Sequence record: OQ427096.1
Length of the DNA stretch: 64,000 bases
Reading direction: 5' to 3' (one strand)
Part shown: piece after piece, positions 4,731 to 61,884 of the stretch
How the letters are laid out: each line of letters opens with the position of its first letter
Numbering within the stretch: the stretch's first letter is position 1
Position numbers and translations under genes: made by a program
Notes under the pieces: generated by a model
Seen by the model: the letters and a program-made list of their open reading frames with translations, nothing else
The model's database searches: none
What the model was told of the DNA's origin: nothing

Positions 4731-5084
4731 ATGAGTGCATCTAGCCAGATGCTGAAACTGTTGGCCAGTTTGCAGAACGAACTGGCCATGGTTGATGTTG
4801 ATCCTGAAATGGCTGAGTTTGCGGAACACGAAAAGATCCTTGATGTGTTCCGACAGACTGTAGCATCAATTGAACACATCTATCCTATGGTGCAGGCGGT
4901 CGAAGAAGTCCTCGACTGGTCTATCACTCCAGCTCTCTTCTATCACAAATGGAAGAGAGCGGCTGCTCACATGGGTGTCGATGACGACATTGGTGAAGAA
5001 GATATCGGTCCAGACGTTCGAGGACTACTCGATCGGTTTAGCGACGATAATGACGATGAAGAAGACGAAGGAGAAGAAAGTTGA
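4731..5084 (+). CDS. Hypothetical protein with acidic C-terminal tail
   Basis: Fills the gap between pol and uvsX; D/E-rich end. Confidence 0.7.
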   Translation: MSASSQMLKLLASLQNELAMVDVDPEMAEFAEHEKILDVFRQTVASIEHIYPMVQAVEEVLDWSITPALFYHKWKRAAAHMGVDDDIGEEDIGPDVRGLLDRFSDDNDDEEDEGEES

Positions 5085-6130
5085 GTTTGGTTGATAAATT
5101 GATGAAGCAGTCTACGATTAAAGAGACTGCATCGCTGGAGAATAGCACCTTCTTCCAGAAAAAAGAACTGGTGCAGACAAAGATTCCCGTCCTCAACCTT
5201 CTTCAGTCGGGTGAGCTTGATGGTGGTTTCGGTCCTGGTCTGACCATCTGGGCAGGTCCATCCAAGCACTTCAAGACCAGCTTTGTGCTGACGAACATGA
5301 AGGCGTTCCTTGACAAGTACAAGGATGGTGTGGTTCTGTTCTACGATTCGGAGTTCGGTACTCCTCAGAGTTACTTCTCGTCCTTCGGTATTCCGCTGGA
5401 TCGCGTTGTTCATACTCCGATTACCAACATCGAGGTGCTCAAGTTCGACCTGATGCAGCAGTTGGATGGTCTGAACCGTGGCGATAAGGTGTTCATCGCA
5501 ATTGACTCGGTTGGTAACCTGGCTTCCAAGAAGGAAGTGGAAGACGCCCTGGAAGGCAAGTCGGTTGCAGACATGACCCGCGCAAAGGCATTCAAGTCTC
5601 TGTTCCGTATGGTCACTCCGGTGCTGTCCCTTAAGGGTCTCTGTATGCACGTCGTGGCTCACACCTACGATACGATGGAGATGTATGCGAAGAAGGTCGT
5701 GTCCGGTGGTACAGGTCTTATCTACTCGGCAGACAACATCTATATCGTTGGTCGTCAGCAGAACAAGGATGGTCAGGAAGTCGTTGGTTACAACTTCGTT
5801 CTGAACGTTGAGAAGTCTCGCTATGTCCGAGAGAAGAGCAAGATTCCGGTCGAGGTAACATTCGAGAACGGTATTTCGCCTTGGTCTGGTCTGCTCGACC
5901 TTGCACTTGAAACAGGTCACGTTGTGAAGCCGTCCAACGGCTGGTATCAGCAGGCTGGCACTGAAAAGAAGCTCCGCCTTGCAGATACGAACAATGCTGC
6001 ATTCTGGGTTCCGATCCTTACCAAGACAGACTTTGGTGCAAAGCTCAAGGAACACTTCCAGCTTGCTCAGACTGAAATGATCAAGGCTGGAACGATCGAT
6101 TACGAAACTGGCGAAGTGATTGAAGAATAA
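5081..6130 (+). CDS. uvsX: RecA-like recombinase UvsX
   Basis: Walker A AGPSKHFKT, LFYDSEFG, IDSVGNLASKKE, VVSGGTG. Confidence 0.97.
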   Translation: MSLVDKLMKQSTIKETASLENSTFFQKKELVQTKIPVLNLLQSGELDGGFGPGLTIWAGPSKHFKTSFVLTNMKAFLDKYKDGVVLFYDSEFGTPQSYFSSFGIPLDRVVHTPITNIEVLKFDLMQQLDGLNRGDKVFIAIDSVGNLASKKEVEDALEGKSVADMTRAKAFKSLFRMVTPVLSLKGLCMHVVAHTYDTMEMYAKKVVSGGTGLIYSADNIYIVGRQQNKDGQEVVGYNFVLNVEKSRYVREKSKIPVEVTFENGISPWSGLLDLALETGHVVKPSNGWYQQAGTEKKLRLADTNNAAFWVPILTKTDFGAKLKEHFQLAQTEMIKAGTIDYETGEVIEE

Positions 6131-7095
6131 TGGTTAAGAAGGTTCTACCAACAACGACGAACTGGCTCTATGCTAAGGAGCCTATGCTCGGAGCGCCAAC
6201 CATTGCGAACATTACGCAATGGTTGCGTAAGAACAAGCTGACGGTTGTCCAAAAAGGTCGTCGTTTGACAGTGAACCATCGAGCCAACGTAGAGCCTGTC
6301 CGTCTCGCTGACGAAATTCAGTTGAGGCTGGAAGGCTCTCGTCGAATCTCAAACCTTGCTGTGAACGTCAATGGTATTGCTATCGTCGTATCGGCTAGCC
6401 TGAAAGGTAACGCTGGTGAGGACAATGAAGAATACTTGATGCACCGTGTCAATCGACTCGTCGGTTGGCTCGGTGGACCTGTTGACGTGACCTTCAAATC
6501 AAAGAAGAAAGCGTTTGAGATCAAAGGCGTTGTCGAAGTCTATCTGTCAGGACGTGATACGTCTGGACATAAGAAAGCCGACGTTGAGTTTTGGACTAAG
6601 AGCGGGAAGATGATTCCTGTATCATTGAAGCAAGGCAACGCTTCATTCTTCTCTTCGGCTGACTCGGAGCTCAAAGAAATTGCTGAGGCATCGGTGCGAT
6701 ACGCATTTGAGAACGCCTTGACCAATTTTGAAATGGATCCTGCAACAAAGATCAGGAAGATCAACCCTGACCTTGTGATTGAACCTACAGATAAGGAAAA
6801 GGAATTCGCCCTTTTCGGAAATGACATCTTGAAAGGTAAAGGTGCTATCATTAGACAGTCATTCACCATGAATGATTTCTTCCAAGATGTGCCCAACAAG
6901 CTGTTCATTCACGTCGAAGACATCTGGCAAGAACTTCGTGATGTGCCAGAGATTGAACAGCCTGTAATTCAGATCAGAAACGACAAAGATAGAAACCGAA
7001 GCCACCCACTGCTCAAAGGTCTACGCGCGCTGACAATCAAACGTGCTGTAGTTCCTAAGAATGCTAGATGGATCGACCGTGAGAAACTAAAATAA
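6130..7095 (+). CDS. Putative restriction-endonuclease-fold (PD-(D/E)XK) nuclease
   Basis: GNAGEDNE helix, KADV (catalytic D), VSLKQ (S-x-K variant of D/E-x-K). Confidence 0.6.
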   Translation: MVKKVLPTTTNWLYAKEPMLGAPTIANITQWLRKNKLTVVQKGRRLTVNHRANVEPVRLADEIQLRLEGSRRISNLAVNVNGIAIVVSASLKGNAGEDNEEYLMHRVNRLVGWLGGPVDVTFKSKKKAFEIKGVVEVYLSGRDTSGHKKADVEFWTKSGKMIPVSLKQGNASFFSSADSELKEIAEASVRYAFENALTNFEMDPATKIRKINPDLVIEPTDKEKEFALFGNDILKGKGAIIRQSFTMNDFFQDVPNKLFIHVEDIWQELRDVPEIEQPVIQIRNDKDRNRSHPLLKGLRALTIKRAVVPKNARWIDREKLK

Positions 7096-7370
7096 TGGAA
7101 CTCTACGTAAAAGAAGCCCGCGAAGACTACCTTGAAGTCATCGACTTGAAACACCCGCAGTACCTTTTCATCTTCGATGGCATTCATGTTGGGACCAACA
7201 ATGGCAAGCTAGAGGTCCTTGTAAATAAAGCGTCGGTACAGAAATCCGACAAAGCGGAAGAGTCTAACCCCGATGCAATTGTCGCGGATGAAGATGAATT
7301 CCTTAGTACACATACCGAACTAATCATCAACGAACTGTTCCGTGGTCCAGTTGAAACGGCACTTGGTTGA
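7095..7370 (+). CDS. Hypothetical protein (position and size like T4 gp40 head vertex chaperone)
   Basis: Lies between uvsX and gp41 like T4 gene 40; sequence similarity not convincing. Confidence 0.4.
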   Translation: MELYVKEAREDYLEVIDLKHPQYLFIFDGIHVGTNNGKLEVLVNKASVQKSDKAEESNPDAIVADEDEFLSTHTELIINELFRGPVETALG

Positions 7371-7404
7371 TATTATCATATAGGAAATCGTAAAGGAAAG
7401 TAAC

Positions 7405-8088
7405 ATGCAGAAAGAAAAAACCAATCCAGAACTCGGTCAGCGCGTTCACAAGCACCTCGTCAGCCTCGGCATTGAAACGCCAATCACTGAGCTGGTGAAT
7501 GTCCCGAGCAAAGAGAAGATCGCGAAGATCGAAGAGTTCCAGCGCCAGTCGTTGCTCACTCTGGGTCTTGATCTGACCGACGACTCTCTGATCGAAACTC
7601 CGAAGCGCATCGCAAAGATGTACGTTGAGGAACTGTTCTACGGTCTGGATTACAACAACTTCCCGAAGTGCACAGAAGTTGATAACAAGATTGAATACGA
7701 TGAGATGGTGATTGAGCGTTGCTCGGTCAAGTCTGTCTGTGAACATCACCTCGTCTACTTTGGTACTGCTCACCGTCCCGATCTGTCTTGCTGGGTGTCT
7801 TACATGCCAGGTGAGAAGGTTCTGGGTCTGTCGAAGCTGTCACGCATCGTAGACTTCTTCAGCCGTCGTCCTCAGATTCAGGAACGCCTGACTGTGCAGA
7901 TTGCTGAGACCATCAAGTTCATCACTGGAACGGAAGATGTTGCCGTTGTGATGAAGGGTCAGCACTTCTGTGTTCTGACCCGTGGTGTTGAGGATTCCGA
8001 TGGCGTGACCATCACCTCTAGCCTGAGTGGTTCGTTCCGTACCGATCCTACGCTGCGATCGGAAATGATGTCTTTGATCAAGGGTTGA
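7405..8088 (+). CDS. folE: GTP cyclohydrolase I
   Basis: ETPKRIAKMY, SVCEHHL, GLSKLSRIV, RRPQIQERLT, HFCVLTRGV. Confidence 0.97.
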   Translation: MQKEKTNPELGQRVHKHLVSLGIETPITELVNVPSKEKIAKIEEFQRQSLLTLGLDLTDDSLIETPKRIAKMYVEELFYGLDYNNFPKCTEVDNKIEYDEMVIERCSVKSVCEHHLVYFGTAHRPDLSCWVSYMPGEKVLGLSKLSRIVDFFSRRPQIQERLTVQIAETIKFITGTEDVAVVMKGQHFCVLTRGVEDSDGVTITSSLSGSFRTDPTLRSEMMSLIKG

Positions 8089-40788: not shown

Positions 40789-41065
40789 TAATGCTGTCGA
40801 GTACCCCGTTCTGAACGATCCGAAGATCCTGGCCAAGGTGAAGGGTGTCTGTCAGGACATTAGCAATGTGATGACCATGATCGAAGCTTCGCGCTCGACC
40901 ATCAAGGCTCACATCGACAACCTGGCGGAAGAGATCGACATTCCGAAGAAGCTGATCCGACAGATGAGCCGTACCTATCATCGTCAGACCTTTGAAACTG
41001 AAGTTCAAGAAAAGGACGCTTTCGAGCAGACCTATGGAAAAGTCTTCGGCTTCGACAACGACTGA
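40772..41065 (+). CDS. dsbA: Double-stranded DNA-binding protein (T4 DsbA-like)
   Basis: IDIPKKLIRQMSRTYHRQTFE...F...Y..VF pattern. Confidence 0.7.
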   Translation: MTNAADNAVEYPVLNDPKILAKVKGVCQDISNVMTMIEASRSTIKAHIDNLAEEIDIPKKLIRQMSRTYHRQTFETEVQEKDAFEQTYGKVFGFDND

Positions 41066-41072
41066 GAACGAA

Positions 41073-41362
41073 ATGTTGCGCCTCATCAACGAGCTTTATG
41101 AGGCGCTCGATTTCGATGCTGAGCACTGTGACTTTGGTCCTGCCTACGGCATGTGGGAAACACGTCGCCGAAAGGCTATGCAGGAAGCACGTCGCCTGTT
41201 AAAATCAAAAAACTTCAAGCGGAGTTGATTATGGCTATTCTCGCAGTGCTCCTCGGTACTGTCATTGTCGGTGGCACGTTCATCCTGCTCGCCGATATCT
41301 TCATCATTCGTCCTCTCGAGGGATACAGAAAGGATCGGTGGTACGACCGGTTCTTCATGTAA
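41073..41362 (+). CDS. Two small proteins (41073-41228; 41231-41362 single-TM)
   Basis: RBS GGAG before 41231; hydrophobic N-terminus. Confidence 0.55.
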
Positions 41363-41386
41363 AGAACTCCTGTGGTGGTTGGGCAC

Positions 41387-49192: not shown

Positions 49193-50638
49193 ATGATTTT
49201 CAATCCGATCCTTGCAACAGACAGCTACAAGTTCTCGCACTTCATGCAGTACCCGAAGGGTACCACTATCGTCAAGAGTTATGTCACGGCGCGTGGCAGC
49301 AAGATTCCTGGCGTTACCGCAGTGGTTTGTGCTGGTCTGCAAATCTTCATTCACGAATATCTCAGCAAGCGCGTGACCAAGAATCACGTCGATCAGGCTG
49401 AGGCATTCTGTGCCAAGCACGGCGTTCCTTTCAACCGCGAAGGTTGGGACCTGATCGTCAACGATCACAACGGCTACCTGCCTGTCGAGATTCGCTCGGT
49501 TGAGGAAGGTACGCCGGTGCCGCTCAATGAGCTTATGATCTCCGTAATCAACACTGACGAGCGTCTGCCGTGGGTGACCTCGTATATCGAGACGCTCCTG
49601 CTGAGCTATGTCTGGTATGCCTCGACTGTGGCAACCAAGAGCCGCGAAATCAAGAAGGTCATCAAGCAGTACCTGGACATCACGTCGGACAATGCTGATG
49701 TGGAACTTCCGTTCAAGCTGCACGACTTCGGTTACCGTGGTGCAACTCCTGGCGCAGCTCATGTTGGTGCCTTCGCGCACCTGATCAACTTCATGGGTAC
49801 TGATACCGTCGCCGGCATCGAAGCTGCAATGGAGTACTACGGTTCGGATGTCTGTGGTTACAGCATCTCGGCTTCGGAGCATTCGACGATGACCAGTTGG
49901 GGTCGCGATGGTGAGTTCGATGCCTACCGCAACATGGTTGACTCCTACGCCAAGCCCGGTGCGATCTTCGCCTGCGTGATCGACAGCTACGACACCTTCG
50001 CAGCAATCGATATGTTCTGTGAAGACCGTTGTGCAGGTGGCTCGCTCCTGGACATCGTCAAGAACCGCGGTGCAACCATCGTGCTCCGCCCTGATAGCGG
50101 TGACCCGATCCAGATGCCAATTGACGTCATCAAGTACCTGATGGAAAAGGTCGGCTACGAGATCAACAACAAGGGTTACAAGGTCCTGCCGAGCCATGTT
50201 CGAGTGATTCAGGGCGATGGCATCGATATTGAAGACGTTGAGCACATCCTGGAGACCCTGGTCGAGGATGAAAAGATCAGCGCCTCGAACATCGCATTTG
50301 GCATGGGTGGCGGACTCCTTCAGAAGGTGAACCGTGATACGTTCAAGTTTGCTATGAAGGCGTGCCTGGCATACATCAACGGCGAAAAGGTAGACATCAT
50401 CAAGGATCCGGTCACTGACCCTGGCAAGAAGTCGAAGGCAGGCGACCTGAGCGTCTATCACAATCCGGAAACTGGAGAGTGGAAGACCATCACTGAAGGT
50501 TCGCTGGATTCGTTCGCTTTCAACAAGCCTTCGAGCAATTGGTATCGCAAGGACTATGTTGTCTATAGCCACTACGGTCGCGATACTTTCTTCGACTATG
50601 TGGACATGGATACTGTTCGTAGGAATGCTGCTCTTTAA
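49193..50638 (+). CDS. nadV: Nicotinamide phosphoribosyltransferase
   Basis: TDSYKFSH, LHDFGYRG, SISASEHS, VIDSYD, RPDSGDP, IQGDG, FGMGGGLLQ, RDT, KKSKAG. Confidence 0.97.
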   Translation: MIFNPILATDSYKFSHFMQYPKGTTIVKSYVTARGSKIPGVTAVVCAGLQIFIHEYLSKRVTKNHVDQAEAFCAKHGVPFNREGWDLIVNDHNGYLPVEIRSVEEGTPVPLNELMISVINTDERLPWVTSYIETLLLSYVWYASTVATKSREIKKVIKQYLDITSDNADVELPFKLHDFGYRGATPGAAHVGAFAHLINFMGTDTVAGIEAAMEYYGSDVCGYSISASEHSTMTSWGRDGEFDAYRNMVDSYAKPGAIFACVIDSYDTFAAIDMFCEDRCAGGSLLDIVKNRGATIVLRPDSGDPIQMPIDVIKYLMEKVGYEINNKGYKVLPSHVRVIQGDGIDIEDVEHILETLVEDEKISASNIAFGMGGGLLQKVNRDTFKFAMKACLAYINGEKVDIIKDPVTDPGKKSKAGDLSVYHNPETGEWKTITEGSLDSFAFNKPSSNWYRKDYVVYSHYGRDTFFDYVDMDTVRRNAAL

Positions 50639-52815: not shown

Positions 52816-53100
52816 TTGACGAATGAATTAATCAATTACAATCCTTGCATGAAAATTGTCCAATTTAAGAACGGTAGGTTTGGTGTTCGCCGAGGATCCT
52901 TCTGGGATTACGGTTGGTGGACACATCAATTCCTAGATTATGAAGGTACCTGGGTAAAGAAGCAGGGATACAATATCGGTTCAGTGGAATGCTATTCCAA
53001 GGAAGAAGCTGAAAGGCGACTCAAGGATTACATTGAATCGGAAGCTTCATATCAGGCCTTTAAGGCATCTGCAAATGATATGGGTAAGCCTGTCAAGTGA
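52816..53100 (+). CDS. Hypothetical protein
   Basis: Open frame with typical phage composition; start uncertain. Confidence 0.55.
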   Translation: MTNELINYNPCMKIVQFKNGRFGVRRGSFWDYGWWTHQFLDYEGTWVKKQGYNIGSVECYSKEEAERRLKDYIESEASYQAFKASANDMGKPVK

Positions 53101-53104
53101 GCTA

Positions 53105-53500
53105 CACCGTCGGGACTAATCCACCGACGCTAATTTATATCATGAACAATAGGTTGTCCAACTAGCCGTCGGCTAAGCGTAGTCGCGACGTGAGATAGAG
53201 TGGGCAAGGCGAGCAATCGTCGGAAGTGCGTAATGTGAGAATAAGGAACCGAGAGGTTCTAAAGTATGACCTGCTCTGCCACACGGCAACAGGTGTTAGG
53301 CAAGTTGATTACTAACTGAATTCTTGTCTATGGCGTGAATCCCGCAAAGGGACCAAAGTGCAATTATAGGGCGATACCGTTCACCTCGTCCTGCTGGGAA
53401 GCAGATTGCAAGTTTGAGTGGTGATGGTATGGACGCAGTTCCCTTTTCTCATCGTCGCACTTTTGGTGGTAATAGCCAAAGTGTGGCTCCAATAAACCGC
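53105..53500 (+). ncRNA. Candidate large structured non-coding RNA, family unknown
   Basis: ~400 nt with no ORF in an otherwise gene-dense genome; many helices, several with GNRA loops. Confidence 0.65.
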
Positions 53501-53522
53501 AATTCTTTTAAAAACATATTTT

Positions 53523-54098: not shown

Positions 54099-54670
54099 AT
54101 GGGTTACGGAACACGTCCGAACAATTTCGGTGGAAACATCAGAACTTTCCAGCCTGACAATACGAAAGATGTGCTGTACATCGACACGACTTTTTCGTCG
54201 GTCACGCTGAAGGAACTCATGGAGAAGATCCGTGAACACTTCGGCAGTGATGATATCGAGAAATTCGATATCGAGGCTCAGTACATCCACACGGATTGCC
54301 TGGGCTACGACTGTTATGACCCCGGTGACTACTCCAGCTTCATCGTCATCACTCGCACAGGAATCCTGTAATGGCTGCTCGATTCAGTCGTCACGCGAAG
54401 CCTCTCTACCGTATCAACCAGCACGGTGAGCTCTACAAGGCGAGTGAAGAATTCAAGACCACCATCCGTCGAGCTGGAGTCTGGAACCGCCCTGCATGTT
54501 TCCGTTGGTGGGCTGAAGGATGCCGAGAGATCAACACCTGGGTATTCGATTCCCAGGGTCAGCATCGTCTCATTGTTGGATACGATCCTGAGACTGACCT
54601 TCTGTATCTCGGGCGCACCTTGACCGAAGAACGCCACCTCCCCAACCGTTTTAAGAATCGAGACATCTGA
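54099..54670 (+). CDS. Two hypothetical proteins (54099-54371, 54371-54670)
   Basis: Behind promoter TTGACC-N17-TAGACT (54041-69). Confidence 0.6.
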
Positions 54671-55617
54671 TGACTGCTCTGCTGATTGGCTCCAACGCAC
54701 TTCGCGCACACGGCATCGCTGTTGAGCGCAGGAACCTGGACATGGACTTCATTGCTACGATGGATTCCATCAAGGCGATGATCGATCGGAACAAGACGCG
54801 CTTCGTCAAGATTCAGCACAGCGAAGATGCGAACCATCTGTTCATGTTCCCTCGTAATGGGAACGACGCCATCTTCGATATCGAAATCGCATGGCTCGAT
54901 TCTGTCAGTGATACCCTCATTGACATCGTCCTGAACAACGGCCTCTACAAGATGACCGAGGAGGGCTACTACGCCGTTTCTCCGTCGGTTGTGCTGGCAC
55001 TCAAGCTGTCGCACAAGTACAAGAAAAACTCGCGTCACTTCCTGAAAACGATGCGCGACATTCAGATGCTCAAGGGACTTGGCTACAAGGTTCCGAAGTG
55101 TCTGAGTGAGTGGCTCAAGGATCGCAAGAAGTGGACCTACGACTATAAGCATCCCAAGTTGGAAGGTGGTGTGACCAAGGCTGACTTCTTCAAGGACGAT
55201 GGCATTCGCTATGTCTACGATCACGACAGCATCCACGTCGCAGTGAAACATCTGCACCAGCCCGCCTATCGCTACTTCCAGCCTGACGGTGAGGAAGTGG
55301 GCACGTCGAAGGAAGACTTCTTCGCTCAGCCGCGTGAGGTACAGCTTCTGGCAGTCCTCGAGGAAAGCTATGTGCTGAGTCTCGAGCGCGCCATTGTTCC
55401 GTTCAACTTGAAGACTATCGAGCAGCGGAAGAAGGCTTTTGACACTGCTCTGGAAAAGGTCTGCACGAGCATCACGTCTGGTTGGTTCCGGAAGTTTGCC
55501 TGGGATAACTTTGACGAAGTGAATGACCTGTATAATCAGGAATATGTGGACCGCTTCTGGCTCGAAGTCGAAAGCGGCAATGTGAAGCCCTACGTGAAGG
55601 AAGAAAATGCTTACTGA
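54670..55617 (+). CDS. Minimal pol-beta-type nucleotidyltransferase with helical C-terminal domain
   Basis: LLIGSNAL...NLDMDFI (GS, DxD), FDIEI. Confidence 0.75.
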   Translation: MTALLIGSNALRAHGIAVERRNLDMDFIATMDSIKAMIDRNKTRFVKIQHSEDANHLFMFPRNGNDAIFDIEIAWLDSVSDTLIDIVLNNGLYKMTEEGYYAVSPSVVLALKLSHKYKKNSRHFLKTMRDIQMLKGLGYKVPKCLSEWLKDRKKWTYDYKHPKLEGGVTKADFFKDDGIRYVYDHDSIHVAVKHLHQPAYRYFQPDGEEVGTSKEDFFAQPREVQLLAVLEESYVLSLERAIVPFNLKTIEQRKKAFDTALEKVCTSITSGWFRKFAWDNFDEVNDLYNQEYVDRFWLEVESGNVKPYVKEENAY

Positions 55618-58710: not shown

Positions 58711-58992
58711 ATGTTCAAGTGTCCTGTTTGTGGTGATTACTCCAATTCGGCTGCTTCATTGGAGTCGCACGCTGCTTGGAAGCACGGTCGACGCATTCGA
58801 GCTGAAAACTATCGTGCGCCATCGCATGATATGACACCGTCAAGTACTGGTGACGCACTTGTTGGTTTGGCTGTAGGATATGCTTTGTCATCGATGTTTG
58901 ATTCATCGAGTAGCGATTACAGTTCGTCATCGTCGGATTGGTCCGGTGGTGGCGGAGACTCTGGAGGCGGTGGCGCTTCTGGGGACTGGTAA
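58711..58992 (+). CDS. C2H2 zinc-finger protein with a Gly/Ser-rich tail
   Basis: CPVC...HAAWKH; GGGGDSGGGGASGDW. Confidence 0.7.
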   Translation: MFKCPVCGDYSNSAASLESHAAWKHGRRIRAENYRAPSHDMTPSSTGDALVGLAVGYALSSMFDSSSSDYSSSSSDWSGGGGDSGGGGASGDW

Positions 58993-59014
58993 AAAGTTGT
59001 AAAGATATAGTGGT

Positions 59015-59380
59015 ATGAAGCCAATCGAAAGGTTGCTTGGACGCGGGTTCGATTCCCGCCAGGTCCACCAAGAACACATTTGATCGCCTTAGCGGGCTTT
59101 CTCTAGTCAGAGCGGATCGTCCTTCGGTGTCTGACAAGATGGGAAGCGTGGGCAAGAGTAAGATGACGTGAGCACCACGGCAAGTGTGTTGTTGATGGGC
59201 CTGCCCAGGTTTCGACAGGCAGGTAATTAGAAACGAGCAGACCACTGTTGAGAGTATCCACTCAACTGAATAAAGATGCAAACTAGCTAAATGTCGCTGC
59301 TAACGACGCCGATTACTCCGTAGCTCGCTACGCCTAATCGCTCAGTCCTCGCCCCTACTGAGTTCCTCATTGGGGCCCCT
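59015..59380 (+). ncRNA. ssrA: Circularly permuted (two-piece) tmRNA
   Basis: Acceptor piece ending GGACGCGGGTTCGATTCCCGCCAGGTCCACCA (CCA at 59070) precedes coding piece GGGCCTG...TTCGAC (59197); G3:U70 pair; ANDA-type tag frame; downstream pseudoknot. Confidence 0.9.
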
Positions 59381-59427
59381 AATTTCATTCTTCGAGAGAT
59401 TAAATACGAAGAAAAGGCACACGAACA

Positions 59428-59823
59428 ATGACTGATAACGAACAACCAAAGCAGAGAATCAATCCTCGCATCTACGGATGGTTGTCCGATATCATGACCT
59501 GGGTCGGAGTGCTGTTCCTTGGTGTCATCCTCGGCAGCGCAATCACGCAGTCGATTGCCATCAAGGACCGTGATCTGTTGGTTTCATCCTACACCCAGAC
59601 GATCGCAACAAAAGATCAGTTGATTGAATCTTTGTCGGTGACAACGGTGAAGGCTGCTGACGTTGCACTCAATCAGAGTACGACTGAGGTAACCAAGGCA
59701 CTTGATACAATGTCTGAGCGCGATAAGACGCTGCGTGACATTGAGAAGCGAATTGAAACAAAGCAGCGCCAAGACGCAGCAAAGAAGGCTGCTGAGGAGC
59801 GTAAACTGCGAGGTCTCAAATGA
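59428..59823 (+). CDS. Inner-membrane spanin-like protein (second pair)
   Basis: Single TM plus coiled coil; GATTAAATA box at 59398-406. Confidence 0.7.
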   Translation: MTDNEQPKQRINPRIYGWLSDIMTWVGVLFLGVILGSAITQSIAIKDRDLLVSSYTQTIATKDQLIESLSVTTVKAADVALNQSTTEVTKALDTMSERDKTLRDIEKRIETKQRQDAAKKAAEERKLRGLK

Positions 59824-60568: not shown

Positions 60569-61433
60569 TTGATTATGAGCAGGCTGGAAGATTTTGTTAT
60601 GCCGGTAGGGACCGAAGAGATTCTCTTCATTGATGGCGAGCATCGTGTGGTAAAGATGACCGTCATTGATCGCCGTGAAGCAGGTATTAATCTGTTCCAC
60701 AATTTTCATATCCGTATGTTGCAGGATGCACATTTCATCTATGGTTTGAAAAAGAAAGAGGTTCTAAAGTCTCGTTGGGGTCACATGACACCTGATGAAT
60801 CTTTTGACCTTGCTCAGTCACTTAGCAGGATCGCGCTGGACCTCGGTCTGGTAGTTGGCAATGGAGTGAGGATTTAATTATGTGCGTTGTTTCGATGATT
60901 GGTGACTCGTTCCAGGATCGTTGGAAGGATCGTCTTCCGAATGATTGGACCATTCCGGCAATGCCGATGCCTTCGCAGCCTATGGCACCTCCGTTCAAGG
61001 AGCGCCGCATTGATGTATCGCATCCGTTCCAGGCGATCAGTCGCGTTGAGTTTGACCTCCTGAAAAAGGAAGTCGAAATCATGAAGGACCTTCTGGAGCG
61101 TGCTATCAAGTACGACAAGGACAACAATGAGCCTCATTGCGAGACGGAGAGCAAGATCGCATTCCTCAAGCAAGTGGCAAAGGCTGTTGGCGTTGACCTT
61201 GAAGAAGTCTTCGGTAAATAACAATGAAGAGCTTTTTTGACGAACAGGGTAGCTTCAATGAGGACGCCCGACAGTTCACAAAAGACGCGCAAGAGATCCT
61301 AAGGCCATTAATGCAGAAATATGCCGGTGCCGGATTTAGCTCGCGTGAAATAGTTTACCTCATTTCAGATGTGGCTTCGATTGAAGAGATCTACATCCGC
61401 CAGGTAAAGAGAATCAGAGATAAGCGTCCTTAG
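60569..61433 (+). CDS. Three hypothetical proteins (60569-60877, 60880-61221, 61224-61433)
   Basis: Closely spaced ORFs; the last stop codon lies inside tRNA-Val. Confidence 0.6.
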
Positions 61434-61499
61434 ATCAGTTGGTAGATCATCTGCTCGACACGCAGAAGGCCACAGGTTCAAGTCCTGTAGGACGCACCA
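61424..61499 (+). tRNA. tRNA-Val(GAC) with C33
   Basis: GCGTCCT/AGGACGC stem, loop TCGACAC, TTCAAGT T-loop, encoded CCA. Confidence 0.9.
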
Positions 61500-61505
61500 A
61501 GTTTT

Positions 61506-61583
61506 GCCTTAGTAGAGAATTGGTAGATCGGCTCCGCTCAAAACGGAGTGTCATTGTCGGTTCGAGTCCGACCTGAGGCACCA
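61506..61583 (+). tRNA. tRNA-Leu(CAA) with an unusually short variable region
   Basis: GCCTTAG/CTGAGGC, loop CTCAAAA, TTCGAGT, CCA. Confidence 0.88.
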
Positions 61584-61585
61584 AG

Positions 61586-61765
61586 ATGACAAACGAAGAA
61601 AAGATCGCTGCAAAGGCAGCAGAAGTAGTACACTACGAAGGAGTCCTTGAACGTTACGGTTCGGGTCGCTGGCTTGACATGGGTCGCCGTCACCTGGCTG
61701 AATTGAACAGGGAACTTCAAGAGTTACGCTCTCAAAGTATTGATGGTGATACGCCGCCCTCGTAA
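61586..61765 (+). CDS. Possible 59-aa ORF between tRNAs, ending inside tRNA-Thr
   Basis: MTNEEKIAAK...; GAGG of the tRNA-Leu 3' stem lies 7 nt upstream. Confidence 0.45.
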   Translation: MTNEEKIAAKAAEVVHYEGVLERYGSGRWLDMGRRHLAELNRELQELRSQSIDGDTPPS

Positions 61766-61802
61766 CGCGGATAAGACAGTTCAAGTCTGTCTGAGAGCAC
61801 CA
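61728..61802 (+). tRNA. tRNA-Thr(CGT)
   Basis: GCTCTCA/TGAGAGC, loop CTCGTAA, C31:C39 mismatch, CCA. Confidence 0.88.
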
Positions 61803-61808
61803 AAACCT

Positions 61809-61884
61809 GGCTATGTGGGTGAGCGGTTTAGCCGACGTCCTCATAAGGCGTTTCACACTGGTTCGAATCCAGTCATAGCCACCA
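61809..61884 (+). tRNA. tRNA-Met(CAT), elongator type (Ile2 not excluded)
   Basis: GGCTATG/CATAGCC, loop CTCATAA, CCA. Confidence 0.88.

Follow-up and report, generated by a model that had tools for sequence, protein, structure and literature searches.

What does the largest stretch without an open reading frame (ORF) in this part of the genome of Xanthomonas phage X1 encode? X1 is a 200-kb T4-like myovirus, and the window analyzed here comprises 64,000 nucleotides (nt) of its sequence record OQ427096.1, where window position plus 62000 gives the position in the record. At thresholds of 50, 60 and 80 amino acids (aa), the largest stretch of the window free of ORFs on either strand spans 422 nt (53101-53522), in agreement with the original prediction, which had described a new, large, structured noncoding RNA on the plus (+) strand that belongs to no classical family. 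Searches against Rfam, covariation among homologues and strand polarity all uphold that description. We propose, with a probability of roughly 0.6, that positions 53154-53497 of the + strand are a structured noncoding RNA gene of about 340 nt, which represents a family absent from Rfam 15 and, more tentatively, may act in trans. As judged from sequence comparison, the existence of the RNA is near certain.

Each cultured Xanthomonas or Stenotrophomonas phage carries two paralogues of the RNA, designated type A and type B, of which the window contains type A. The X1 region is 96-99% identical to that of phage BUDD, with values of 98.8% for type A (53154-53497) and 98.3% for type B, against about 86% in the flanks and over the surrounding 10 kb; the comparison points to an RNA gene that is under strong purifying selection. 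Homologues were found in BUDD, in all Stenotrophomonas Menderavirus phages, in Variovorax phage V45v66, in Acidovorax phage ACP17 and in about eight metagenomic viral lineages, and segment 53154-53497 is homologous over its full length in at least 12 lineages. The Menderavirus phages match the X1 RNA in blocks, at two places per genome. Further members came from IMG/VR and metagenome contigs through exact-pattern scans with the hairpin Ha as bait (features are listed in Table 1; loci in the comparison carry L numbers), whereas a search by synteny instead of pattern added L132 and the second copies of X1 (L136) and BUDD. A covariance model, R1, was built on a 131-position core comprising Ha, Hb, UGGCG, Hg and H2, with helix H1 left out. 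True members score 64-132 bits with R1 and everything else at most 31 bits, and the window holds one copy. This copy scores 132.3 bits (E = 1e-40) and, as a seed sequence, matches by construction; independent members are X1 type B (89 bits), BUDD type B (89 bits) and L132 (64 bits). The gaps between the terminase genes terS and terL in V45v66 and ACP17 hold diverged homologues, in which the same helices can be read with different sequences; V45v66 gives a weak partial match to R1.

The distribution of the family is narrow. The RNA was not found at 80 T4-type terL loci of 44-50% identity, which confines the family to a single clade of T4-like myoviruses. Scanning 185,579 bacterial and archaeal genomes with the Ha pattern yielded a single chance match inside a coding region of a metagenome-assembled genome and no homologue, and the ACP17-type 5' motif recovered only ACP17 itself among viral contigs. 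A loose Ha pattern gave 33 loci in viral contigs, of which the new ones were rejected as members, matching Ha only and scoring at most 31 bits with R1. Likewise rejected was L037/L041, which has Ha and a GNRA hairpin and lacks the pseudoknot.

The core fold consists of the hairpins Ha and Hb, the invariant UGGCG, a three-way junction in which H3 encloses H2 and H4, and the pseudoknot H1 formed across Hg. In the model-based alignment of 17 sequences over the 131-position core, 97.0% of the cells pair, compared with 36-46% when the partners are slid. Compensatory changes occur in 22 of 31 pairs, and the covariation score is 0.664 against 0.05-0.14; none of 500 shuffles reaches any of these measures. 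Thus the test of covariation among collected homologues, which the original prediction had named among its checks, came out in its favor. A MAFFT alignment of 15 cores gave a similar picture, with 93.7% standard pairs versus 37-46% when the 3' partners were slid by 1-3 columns, changes on both sides in 17 of 31 pairs, and a covariation score of 0.525 versus 0.07-0.13.

The H1 3' strand sits in the loop of H2, and this loop pairs with the strand following UGGCG, resulting in a pseudoknot. Since H1 is absent from the covariance model, the alignment was not fitted to it. H1 also pairs in V45v66 (GUCAU/AUGAC) and ACP17 (GCUAC/GUAGC), and these two distant phages keep H1, Hg, H2, H3 and H4 with entirely different sequences. 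The covariation is equally compatible with an intramolecular and an intermolecular H1. The H2 loop, TACCG plus TTCAC, combines a conserved (A)CCG with the H1 3' strand, and H2 shows a conserved G·U pair in 13 of 16 distinct sequences. The Hg loop reads GCGA, GAAA or GCAAA in 14 of the 17 aligned members. Ha is invariant among the members collected with it as bait; the members found by synteny carry compensatory changes, from U-A to C-G in L132 and from U-A to A-U in type B of X1 and BUDD. H3 occurs in every lineage with unrelated sequences, including a change from C-G to U-A between X1 and L016. It could not be counted by column, as the length of H4 is variable. Most members have a hairpin at the H4 position, with GUUC/GAAC in L013 versus GCUC/GAGC in L015. 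A wide-window test for the longest complementary run was not significant for H3 (p = 0.18); narrower anchored tests were used instead, with combined p values of about 1e-4 for duplex energy and 4e-5 for the Watson-Crick run.

The coding strand follows from the same helices. G·U pairs outnumber A·C mismatches by 17:0 in type A and 22:2 in type B, 39 to 2 together, and the hairpin loops read GCGA or GAAA on the + strand only. Both signs had been invoked by the original prediction for the plus strand, and both hold; the comparative data place the RNA on the + strand. Minimum free energy z-scores (-1.9 for the + strand and -2.6 for the - strand) were discarded as evidence, being uninformative and even favoring the wrong strand; the proof is comparative, not energetic. 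As only a transcript would account for the strand asymmetry and the GNRA loops, and the long-range helices and the pseudoknot covary, it is extremely improbable that the region is a DNA-level element such as a pac site, an origin or an operator array, in spite of the location at packaging genes and the palindromes GTCGCGAC and TAGCC/GGCTA in the 5' block. The same low estimate applies to a decayed protein gene. Small coding sequences (CDSs) are annotated over the RNA in the phages Mendera and Moby, which would fit such a gene; however, these ORFs are not conserved among members, and no ORF in the X1 RNA region exceeds 48 aa.

Three members (L011, L012 and L132) have textbook sigma-70-type promoters, TTGACA or TTGACT-N17-TATAAT or TATAAA, located 20-60 nt upstream of the RNA. 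On this ground the RNA is taken to be an independent gene, predicted as its own transcription unit in at least three lineages. At the 3' end of the X1 RNA, a consensus scan of the + strand detected nothing resembling a terminator.

Does the RNA belong to a known family? Rfam 15 comprises 4227 models, including RNase P, tmRNA, SRP, 6S, group I and II introns, GOLLD, ROOL, OLE, raiA, HEARO, pRNA and riboswitches. At gathering thresholds none of them matched the X1 region, the matches elsewhere in the window being a permuted tmRNA and four tRNAs. When the X1 region was scanned permissively (E up to 10), only freshwater-1 at 18.5 bits and one chance match of 12.6 bits came up, and five other member loci gave no match at E up to 1. 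The original prediction had failed to find the hallmarks of known families and had suggested a covariance-model search, which thus reaches no known family at threshold in X1 or the five further loci. Because every test of membership in a known RNA family came out negative, we rate the RNA as a new family; it is new at the level of the RNA family, while orphan ornate phage RNAs as a general phenomenon are already known.

The only Rfam family with any signal is freshwater-1 (RF02979), matched with E = 0.25 over model positions 11-57 of 62 and far below its gathering score of 72. It is the closest in sequence, through Ha alone: both RNAs carry the hairpin CCUG-CUC-UG...CA-A-CAGG followed by a second hairpin. 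However, freshwater-1 is a 62-position motif, whereas the X1 hairpin is one module of an RNA of about 340 nt, and in V45v66 and ACP17 a plain hairpin replaces the freshwater-1-like Ha. The hairpin ACCUG-CUC-UG...CA-A-CAGGU recurs in noncoding DNA of unrelated viral contigs, at L038 597-625 and L040 1625-1652, in both cases inside tRNA clusters; that of L038 lies about 650 nt upstream of a GOLLD RNA. Other contigs with an Ha-like hairpin are L027/L047, L030, L034, L037/L041, L043, L045 and L046. This recurring hairpin may represent a common module, structural or for protein binding, with a relationship to freshwater-1.

In style the RNA resembles GOLLD (RF02032) and ROOL, to which the original prediction had likened it. 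It is phage-borne, independently transcribed and several hundred nt long, with many helices, pseudoknots and GNRA-type features, and to our knowledge the function of GOLLD and ROOL is likewise not known. The likeness therefore stands as one of style, for an ornate, phage-borne, orphan and shorter RNA, and fails as one of membership: neither model matches X1 or other members, while the GOLLD model scores 274 bits in L038. The length is about 340 nt versus roughly 600-800 nt, and host range and phage type differ, as does the presence of two paralogues per genome. GOLLD and ROOL usually lie beside tRNA genes, whereas the nearest tRNA genes in the window are about 8 kb off and type B is located in the terS-terL gap.

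That the RNA is a known ribozyme or belongs to a known RNA family, such as group I introns, RNase P or GOLLD/ROOL, in a form too diverged for the Rfam models is hardly to be expected. The ornate style of the X1 RNA would suit such an origin, and the order H1 5' strand, hairpin, H2 5' strand, H1 3' strand, H2 3' strand superficially recalls the P3/P7 pseudoknot of group I introns, with which the RNA also shares interleaved long-range helices round a junction, GNRA loops and occurrence in T4-like phages. However, the RNA interrupts no gene, and type B is opposite in strand to both flanking genes. There is no P8 between the would-be P3' and P7', as only 1-3 nt separate the H1 and H2 3' strands in all members; moreover, the RNA has its own promoters (in the three members named above), and even permissive thresholds gave no family match across six member loci.

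The genomic positions of the two paralogues bear on function. Type A lies among co-oriented, early-looking genes downstream of NAMPT in X1, BUDD, L016 and Mendera; L011 and L014 are probable type A copies, though with other neighbors. Type B fills a gap of roughly 500 nt that separates terS from terL, and runs opposite to both genes. It is present in Menderavirus, X1, BUDD, L012, L013, L015, L023, L024/L025 and L132, and in a diverged form in V45v66 and ACP17, and is the widespread and probably ancestral form. Pfam searches identified a T4-type TerL beside type B, and TerS too where detectable. In X1, type B was found at L136 2560-2905 (-), corresponding to OQ427096.1 ~41020-41370, in an unannotated terS-terL gap outside the window; in BUDD it lies at L140 1149-1281 (-). 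In one member, L013, the terL frame appears split into three ORFs of 321, 218 and 356 aa (5064-7714, -), which could reflect an intron, an intein, a frameshift or an assembly error. The "IME-SM1" of a 2014 termini paper was set aside, being a Serratia phage and not the Stenotrophomonas one.

The X1 paralogues are 100% identical over the 42-nt block 53160-53201 and only 20-66% identical elsewhere. Menderavirus phages (L003 versus L009) show the same pattern with their own lineage-specific version of a 42-46-nt 5' block. In BUDD the two blocks differ at 2 positions, with one private change in each copy; homogenization of the block is thus not continuous, and ongoing gene conversion at the resolution of single substitutions was ruled out. 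The concerted behavior could reflect gene conversion or co-selection for a common phage-specific partner. L011 and L132 come from the same metagenome with 5' blocks that are not identical, and may derive from different phages.

That type B runs opposite to terS and terL in every lineage with known context suggests a cis-antisense RNA, which would be transcribed against the late terS-to-terL transcript, pair perfectly with its intercistronic region and time terminase expression through RNase III cleavage or transcriptional interference, type A being a trans-acting spare copy. The sigma-70-type promoters, which suggest early expression ahead of the late genes, would agree with this, and for type B, placed between co-oriented terS and terL, overlap with an opposing transcript is plausible. 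We nevertheless consider it unlikely. Antisense control needs sequence, not fold; here the sequence drifts, and helices, pseudoknot and GNRA loops are kept by compensatory change. Type B overlaps noncoding DNA only, not the coding or start regions of terS and terL. In addition, nothing lies opposite the window copy on the other strand, and the identity of that copy to type B outside the 42-nt block is too low for pairing.

The setting of type A raises a different question, namely whether the RNA is a cis-regulatory leader, a riboswitch-like 5' untranslated region belonging to the gene that follows it (in X1, the DprA-like CDS). We regard this as quite improbable. In X1, BUDD and L016, and in these alone, RNA and gene share a strand and are closely spaced, and the downstream gene is homologous; moreover, no Shine-Dalgarno sequence is visible, and the ornate core with its invariant unpaired bases resembles a ligand pocket. 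In contrast, type B converges on terS and so has no co-oriented downstream gene, the ORF downstream of type A in Mendera is a different, unrelated one, and we saw no terminator/antiterminator or start-site-sequestering alternative. A length of 340 nt is also far above that of known riboswitch aptamers.

A gene that has held its place between terS and terL in phages of both Gamma- and Betaproteobacteria could also encode a packaging-associated RNA, that is, a cofactor or scaffold of the DNA-packaging machinery with a role like that of the phi29 pRNA, in which H1 would be intermolecular and build a ring. The two RNAs are both phage-encoded, structured and genetically linked to DNA packaging, and the loop-strand pairing that covariation supports here could in principle be intermolecular; an intermolecular H1 fits our covariation as well as an intramolecular one. 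phi29 pRNA is an early transcript too. However, no similarity to pRNA was found in sequence or model, and the lengths differ (about 340 nt versus 120-174 nt). Unlike phi29, the phages here have a complete T4-type TerS/TerL system, which is not known to require RNA; T4-type terminases are known to package without it. The 80 related T4-type terL loci without the RNA, and an orientation opposite to the late genes, which argues against co-expression, make this role, itself purely conjectural, very unlikely.

An IMG/VR survey (Fremin et al. 2023, PMC10690425) reports 14 candidates without a name that are always found upstream of a gene for a putative large terminase. Similar to them, type B lies just upstream of terL; as described there, however, those candidates are read as cis-regulatory, on the strand of the gene and with psiM2_ORF9-type terminases, whereas this RNA is on the opposite strand beside a T4-type terL.

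We therefore return to a trans-acting RNA. While its sequence drifts, the RNA retains its complex fold, its GNRA loops and a small set of invariant nucleotides that are unpaired, and it functions in two genomic settings that are unrelated. For these two reasons we tentatively propose, at somewhat less than even odds, a trans-acting RNA that depends on its tertiary fold and serves as a scaffold bound by protein, binds a ligand or is catalytic. In such a mechanism, the GNRA loops would dock and compact the core, the invariant unpaired UGGCG, CCRAA and ACCG would form an active or binding site, and the 5' module, identical between the paralogues of a genome, would recognize a phage-specific partner. 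The site of type B between terS and terL hints at a connection with the packaging or late module without proving one. More specific versions, namely an RNA cofactor or scaffold of the TerS/TerL packaging module, or a new ribozyme or ligand-binding class with the pseudoknotted core as its active site, appear doubtful; either would add to phage biology a type of component for which T4-like phages offer no described example. If the packaging-cofactor version were true, a pRNA-like role would exist in a terminase system thought to be protein-only.

Several points weigh against the proposed trans-acting RNA of a new family. Its function is wholly inferred, including partner, ligand and reaction, and the location between terS and terL might be no more than inherited, with nothing to say about function. 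The consensus scan found neither a consensus promoter nor a terminator at the X1 locus. The sample comprises about 12 lineages, most of them collected with the Ha pattern, and kinship inflates the shuffle statistics. The identical 5' block could result from gene conversion instead of a shared partner, and the BUDD copies do differ at 2 positions. Two candidate pairings compete tentatively for the 5' end, P1 and a 5'-3' closing helix. Finally, this RNA could already figure in the set of 10,006 candidates left without names by Fremin et al. 2023 (PMC10690425).

Table 1. Features of the RNA locus of phage X1, in window coordinates.
Feature	Position	Strand	Remarks
Small hypothetical CDS	52849-53100	+	upstream neighbor
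Hairpin CGTCGG...CCGACG	53108-53129	+	directly after the stop of the upstream CDS, outside the conserved RNA
Conserved upstream motif TATATCATGAACAAT	53136-53150	+	kept in BUDD and Menderavirus type B
Structured RNA, type A paralogue	53154-53497	+	minimal conserved extent, ~340 nt
Tentative helix P1, TTGTCCA with TGGGCAA	53154-53160 with 53201-53207	+	encloses the 5' module; combined p ~0.04, marginal
5' module, 42-nt block	53160-53201	+	TAGCC-GTC-GGCTA hairpin, CTAAGCG, hairpin P2 (53178-53190), TGAGATAGAG
Hairpin GGAACC-GAGA-GGTTC	53245-53259	+	followed by conserved AAAGTAT; same place in most members
Hairpin Ha, ACCTG-CTC-TGCC...GGCA-A-CAGGT	53269-53294	+	asymmetric internal loop; most conserved element
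Variable hairpin Hb, TAGGCAAG...CTTGTCTA	53297-53330	+	changes on both sides in 8/8 pairs, 94.5% paired
Invariant TGGCG	53331-53335	+	17/17 aligned sequences; GGGCG in V45v66 and ACP17; last G starts H1
Pseudoknot helix H1, GTGAA with TTCAC	53335-53339 with 53380-53384	+	96.2% paired, 4/5 pairs changed on both sides
Hairpin Hg, TCCC-GCAAA-GGGA	53340-53352	+	compensatory changes in 4/4 pairs; GNRA-type loop
Conserved CCAAAG	53353-53358	+	directly after Hg
Helix H3, TGCAATT with GATTGCA	53359-53365 with 53404-53410	+	closes the three-way junction with H2 and H4
Helix H2, GGGCGA with TCGTCC	53369-53374 with 53386-53391	+	99% paired, 5/6 pairs changed on both sides
Hairpin H4, TGCT-GGGA-AGCA	53392-53403	+	variable length; in most members a hairpin separates H2 from the 3' strand of H3
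3'-domain hairpin GTGGTGATG...CATCGTCGC	53418-53458	+	lineage-specific; other members have a different hairpin there
Terminal hairpin CACTTTTGG...CCAAAGTG	53458-53483	+	combined shuffle p = 3e-5
Semi-conserved tail TGGCTCCAA	up to 53498	+	consensus GUG.CU.AA as far as V45v66 and ACP17
Weakly DprA-like CDS	starts 53523	+	downstream neighbor, ~25 nt past the RNA

Outside the core, the 5' module contains a motif, CUAAKCG-hairpin-GURAG, whose conservation extends to V45v66 and ACP17. For P1, every lineage allows a helix to be drawn, each with its own sequence; the alternative 5'-3' closing helix, with p of about 0.014, is also marginal. The loops of the hairpin at 53245-53259 are often of the GNRA type (GAGA, GAAA or GGAA), and L016 has GGATC-GAGA-GATC. 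The terminal hairpin shows changes such as CUUUUGG/CCAAAG to CUUCGG/CCGAAG and is not an intrinsic terminator, because no U-run follows it. In L012, L013, L015 and L132, a conserved GAGGCGAAGCCGAG-like element and small GAA-loop hairpins were observed 60-120 nt downstream of the RNA, between its 3' end and the terS stop; these features may prolong the RNA at its 3' end or act as a terS terminator.

All helices listed in the original prediction are present in the sequence. Homologues support AGGCAAG/CTTGTCT (Hb), TCCC-GCAAA-GGGA (Hg), TGCAAT/ATTGCA (H3), CTGCT-GGGA-AGCAG (H4), GGAACC-GAGA-GGTTCT and CACTTT/AAAGTG (the terminal hairpin), while TAGCC/GGCTA, GGCGA-GCAA-TCGTC and GTGGTGATG/CATCGTCGC are lineage-specific or invariant. 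CGTCGG/CCGACG is real as a helix, since BUDD has CGTCAC...GTGACG by a double compensatory change, but it lies outside the conserved RNA. In Mendera a terminator is annotated at the equivalent place, whereas the consensus scan of X1 calls none; the hairpin is probably the terminator of the upstream gene. Ha, H2, the pseudoknot H1, the second genomic copy and the position between the terminase genes had escaped that first reading.

The conserved upstream motif TATATCATGAACAAT could be either a gene-specific promoter element or a 5' leader. A recurrent phage promoter was rejected, with 4 matches in the window against 4.2 expected. All neighbors of the window copy are on the + strand. The NAMPT gene lies about 2.5 kb upstream of the ORF-free stretch and, together with other nicotinamide adenine dinucleotide (NAD)-salvage genes, occupies window 49193-50638 and its neighborhood. 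The X1 paper links the NAD-salvage genes to countering a NAD-depleting host defense and makes no mention of a noncoding RNA. Downstream of the RNA, a protein with DUF7277 and DUF7275 is encoded at 54670-55617. Further on, the + strand carries a permuted (two-piece) tmRNA gene at 58978-59428 (Rfam tmRNA_permuted, 76.6 bits), for which ARAGORN gave the tag peptide VAANDADYSVARYA*, and four tRNA genes at 61424-61884 (Val-GAC, Leu-CAA, Thr-CGT and Met-CAT). Permuted tmRNA is typical of Alphaproteobacteria and cyanobacteria, and is unexpected in a gammaproteobacterial phage. In other phages, small hypothetical proteins are annotated over the RNA, namely CDS 078 and 079 of Mendera (L003 3002-3233) and, on the opposite strand, CDS 001 of Moby (L004 1924-2106). 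These CDSs are probably mis-annotations.

The family thus corrects the annotation of several phage records, in which hypothetical proteins were called over the RNA, and of others, in which the loci are unannotated. Few large RNAs combine an intricate fold with conserved pseudoknots, and the majority of those understood so far are ribozymes or central components of ribonucleoproteins. The orphan classes GOLLD, ROOL and OLE are hard to study. This family occurs in cultured, lytic and genetically accessible phages of Xanthomonas, Stenotrophomonas, Variovorax and Acidovorax. Its two paralogues can be deleted singly or together, one of them is at a fixed place in the DNA-packaging module, and the 5' module behaves as though co-evolving with a phage-specific partner. 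Because of these tractable phages, the paired genes, the fixed site and the behavior of the 5' module, the function of the RNA is directly testable.

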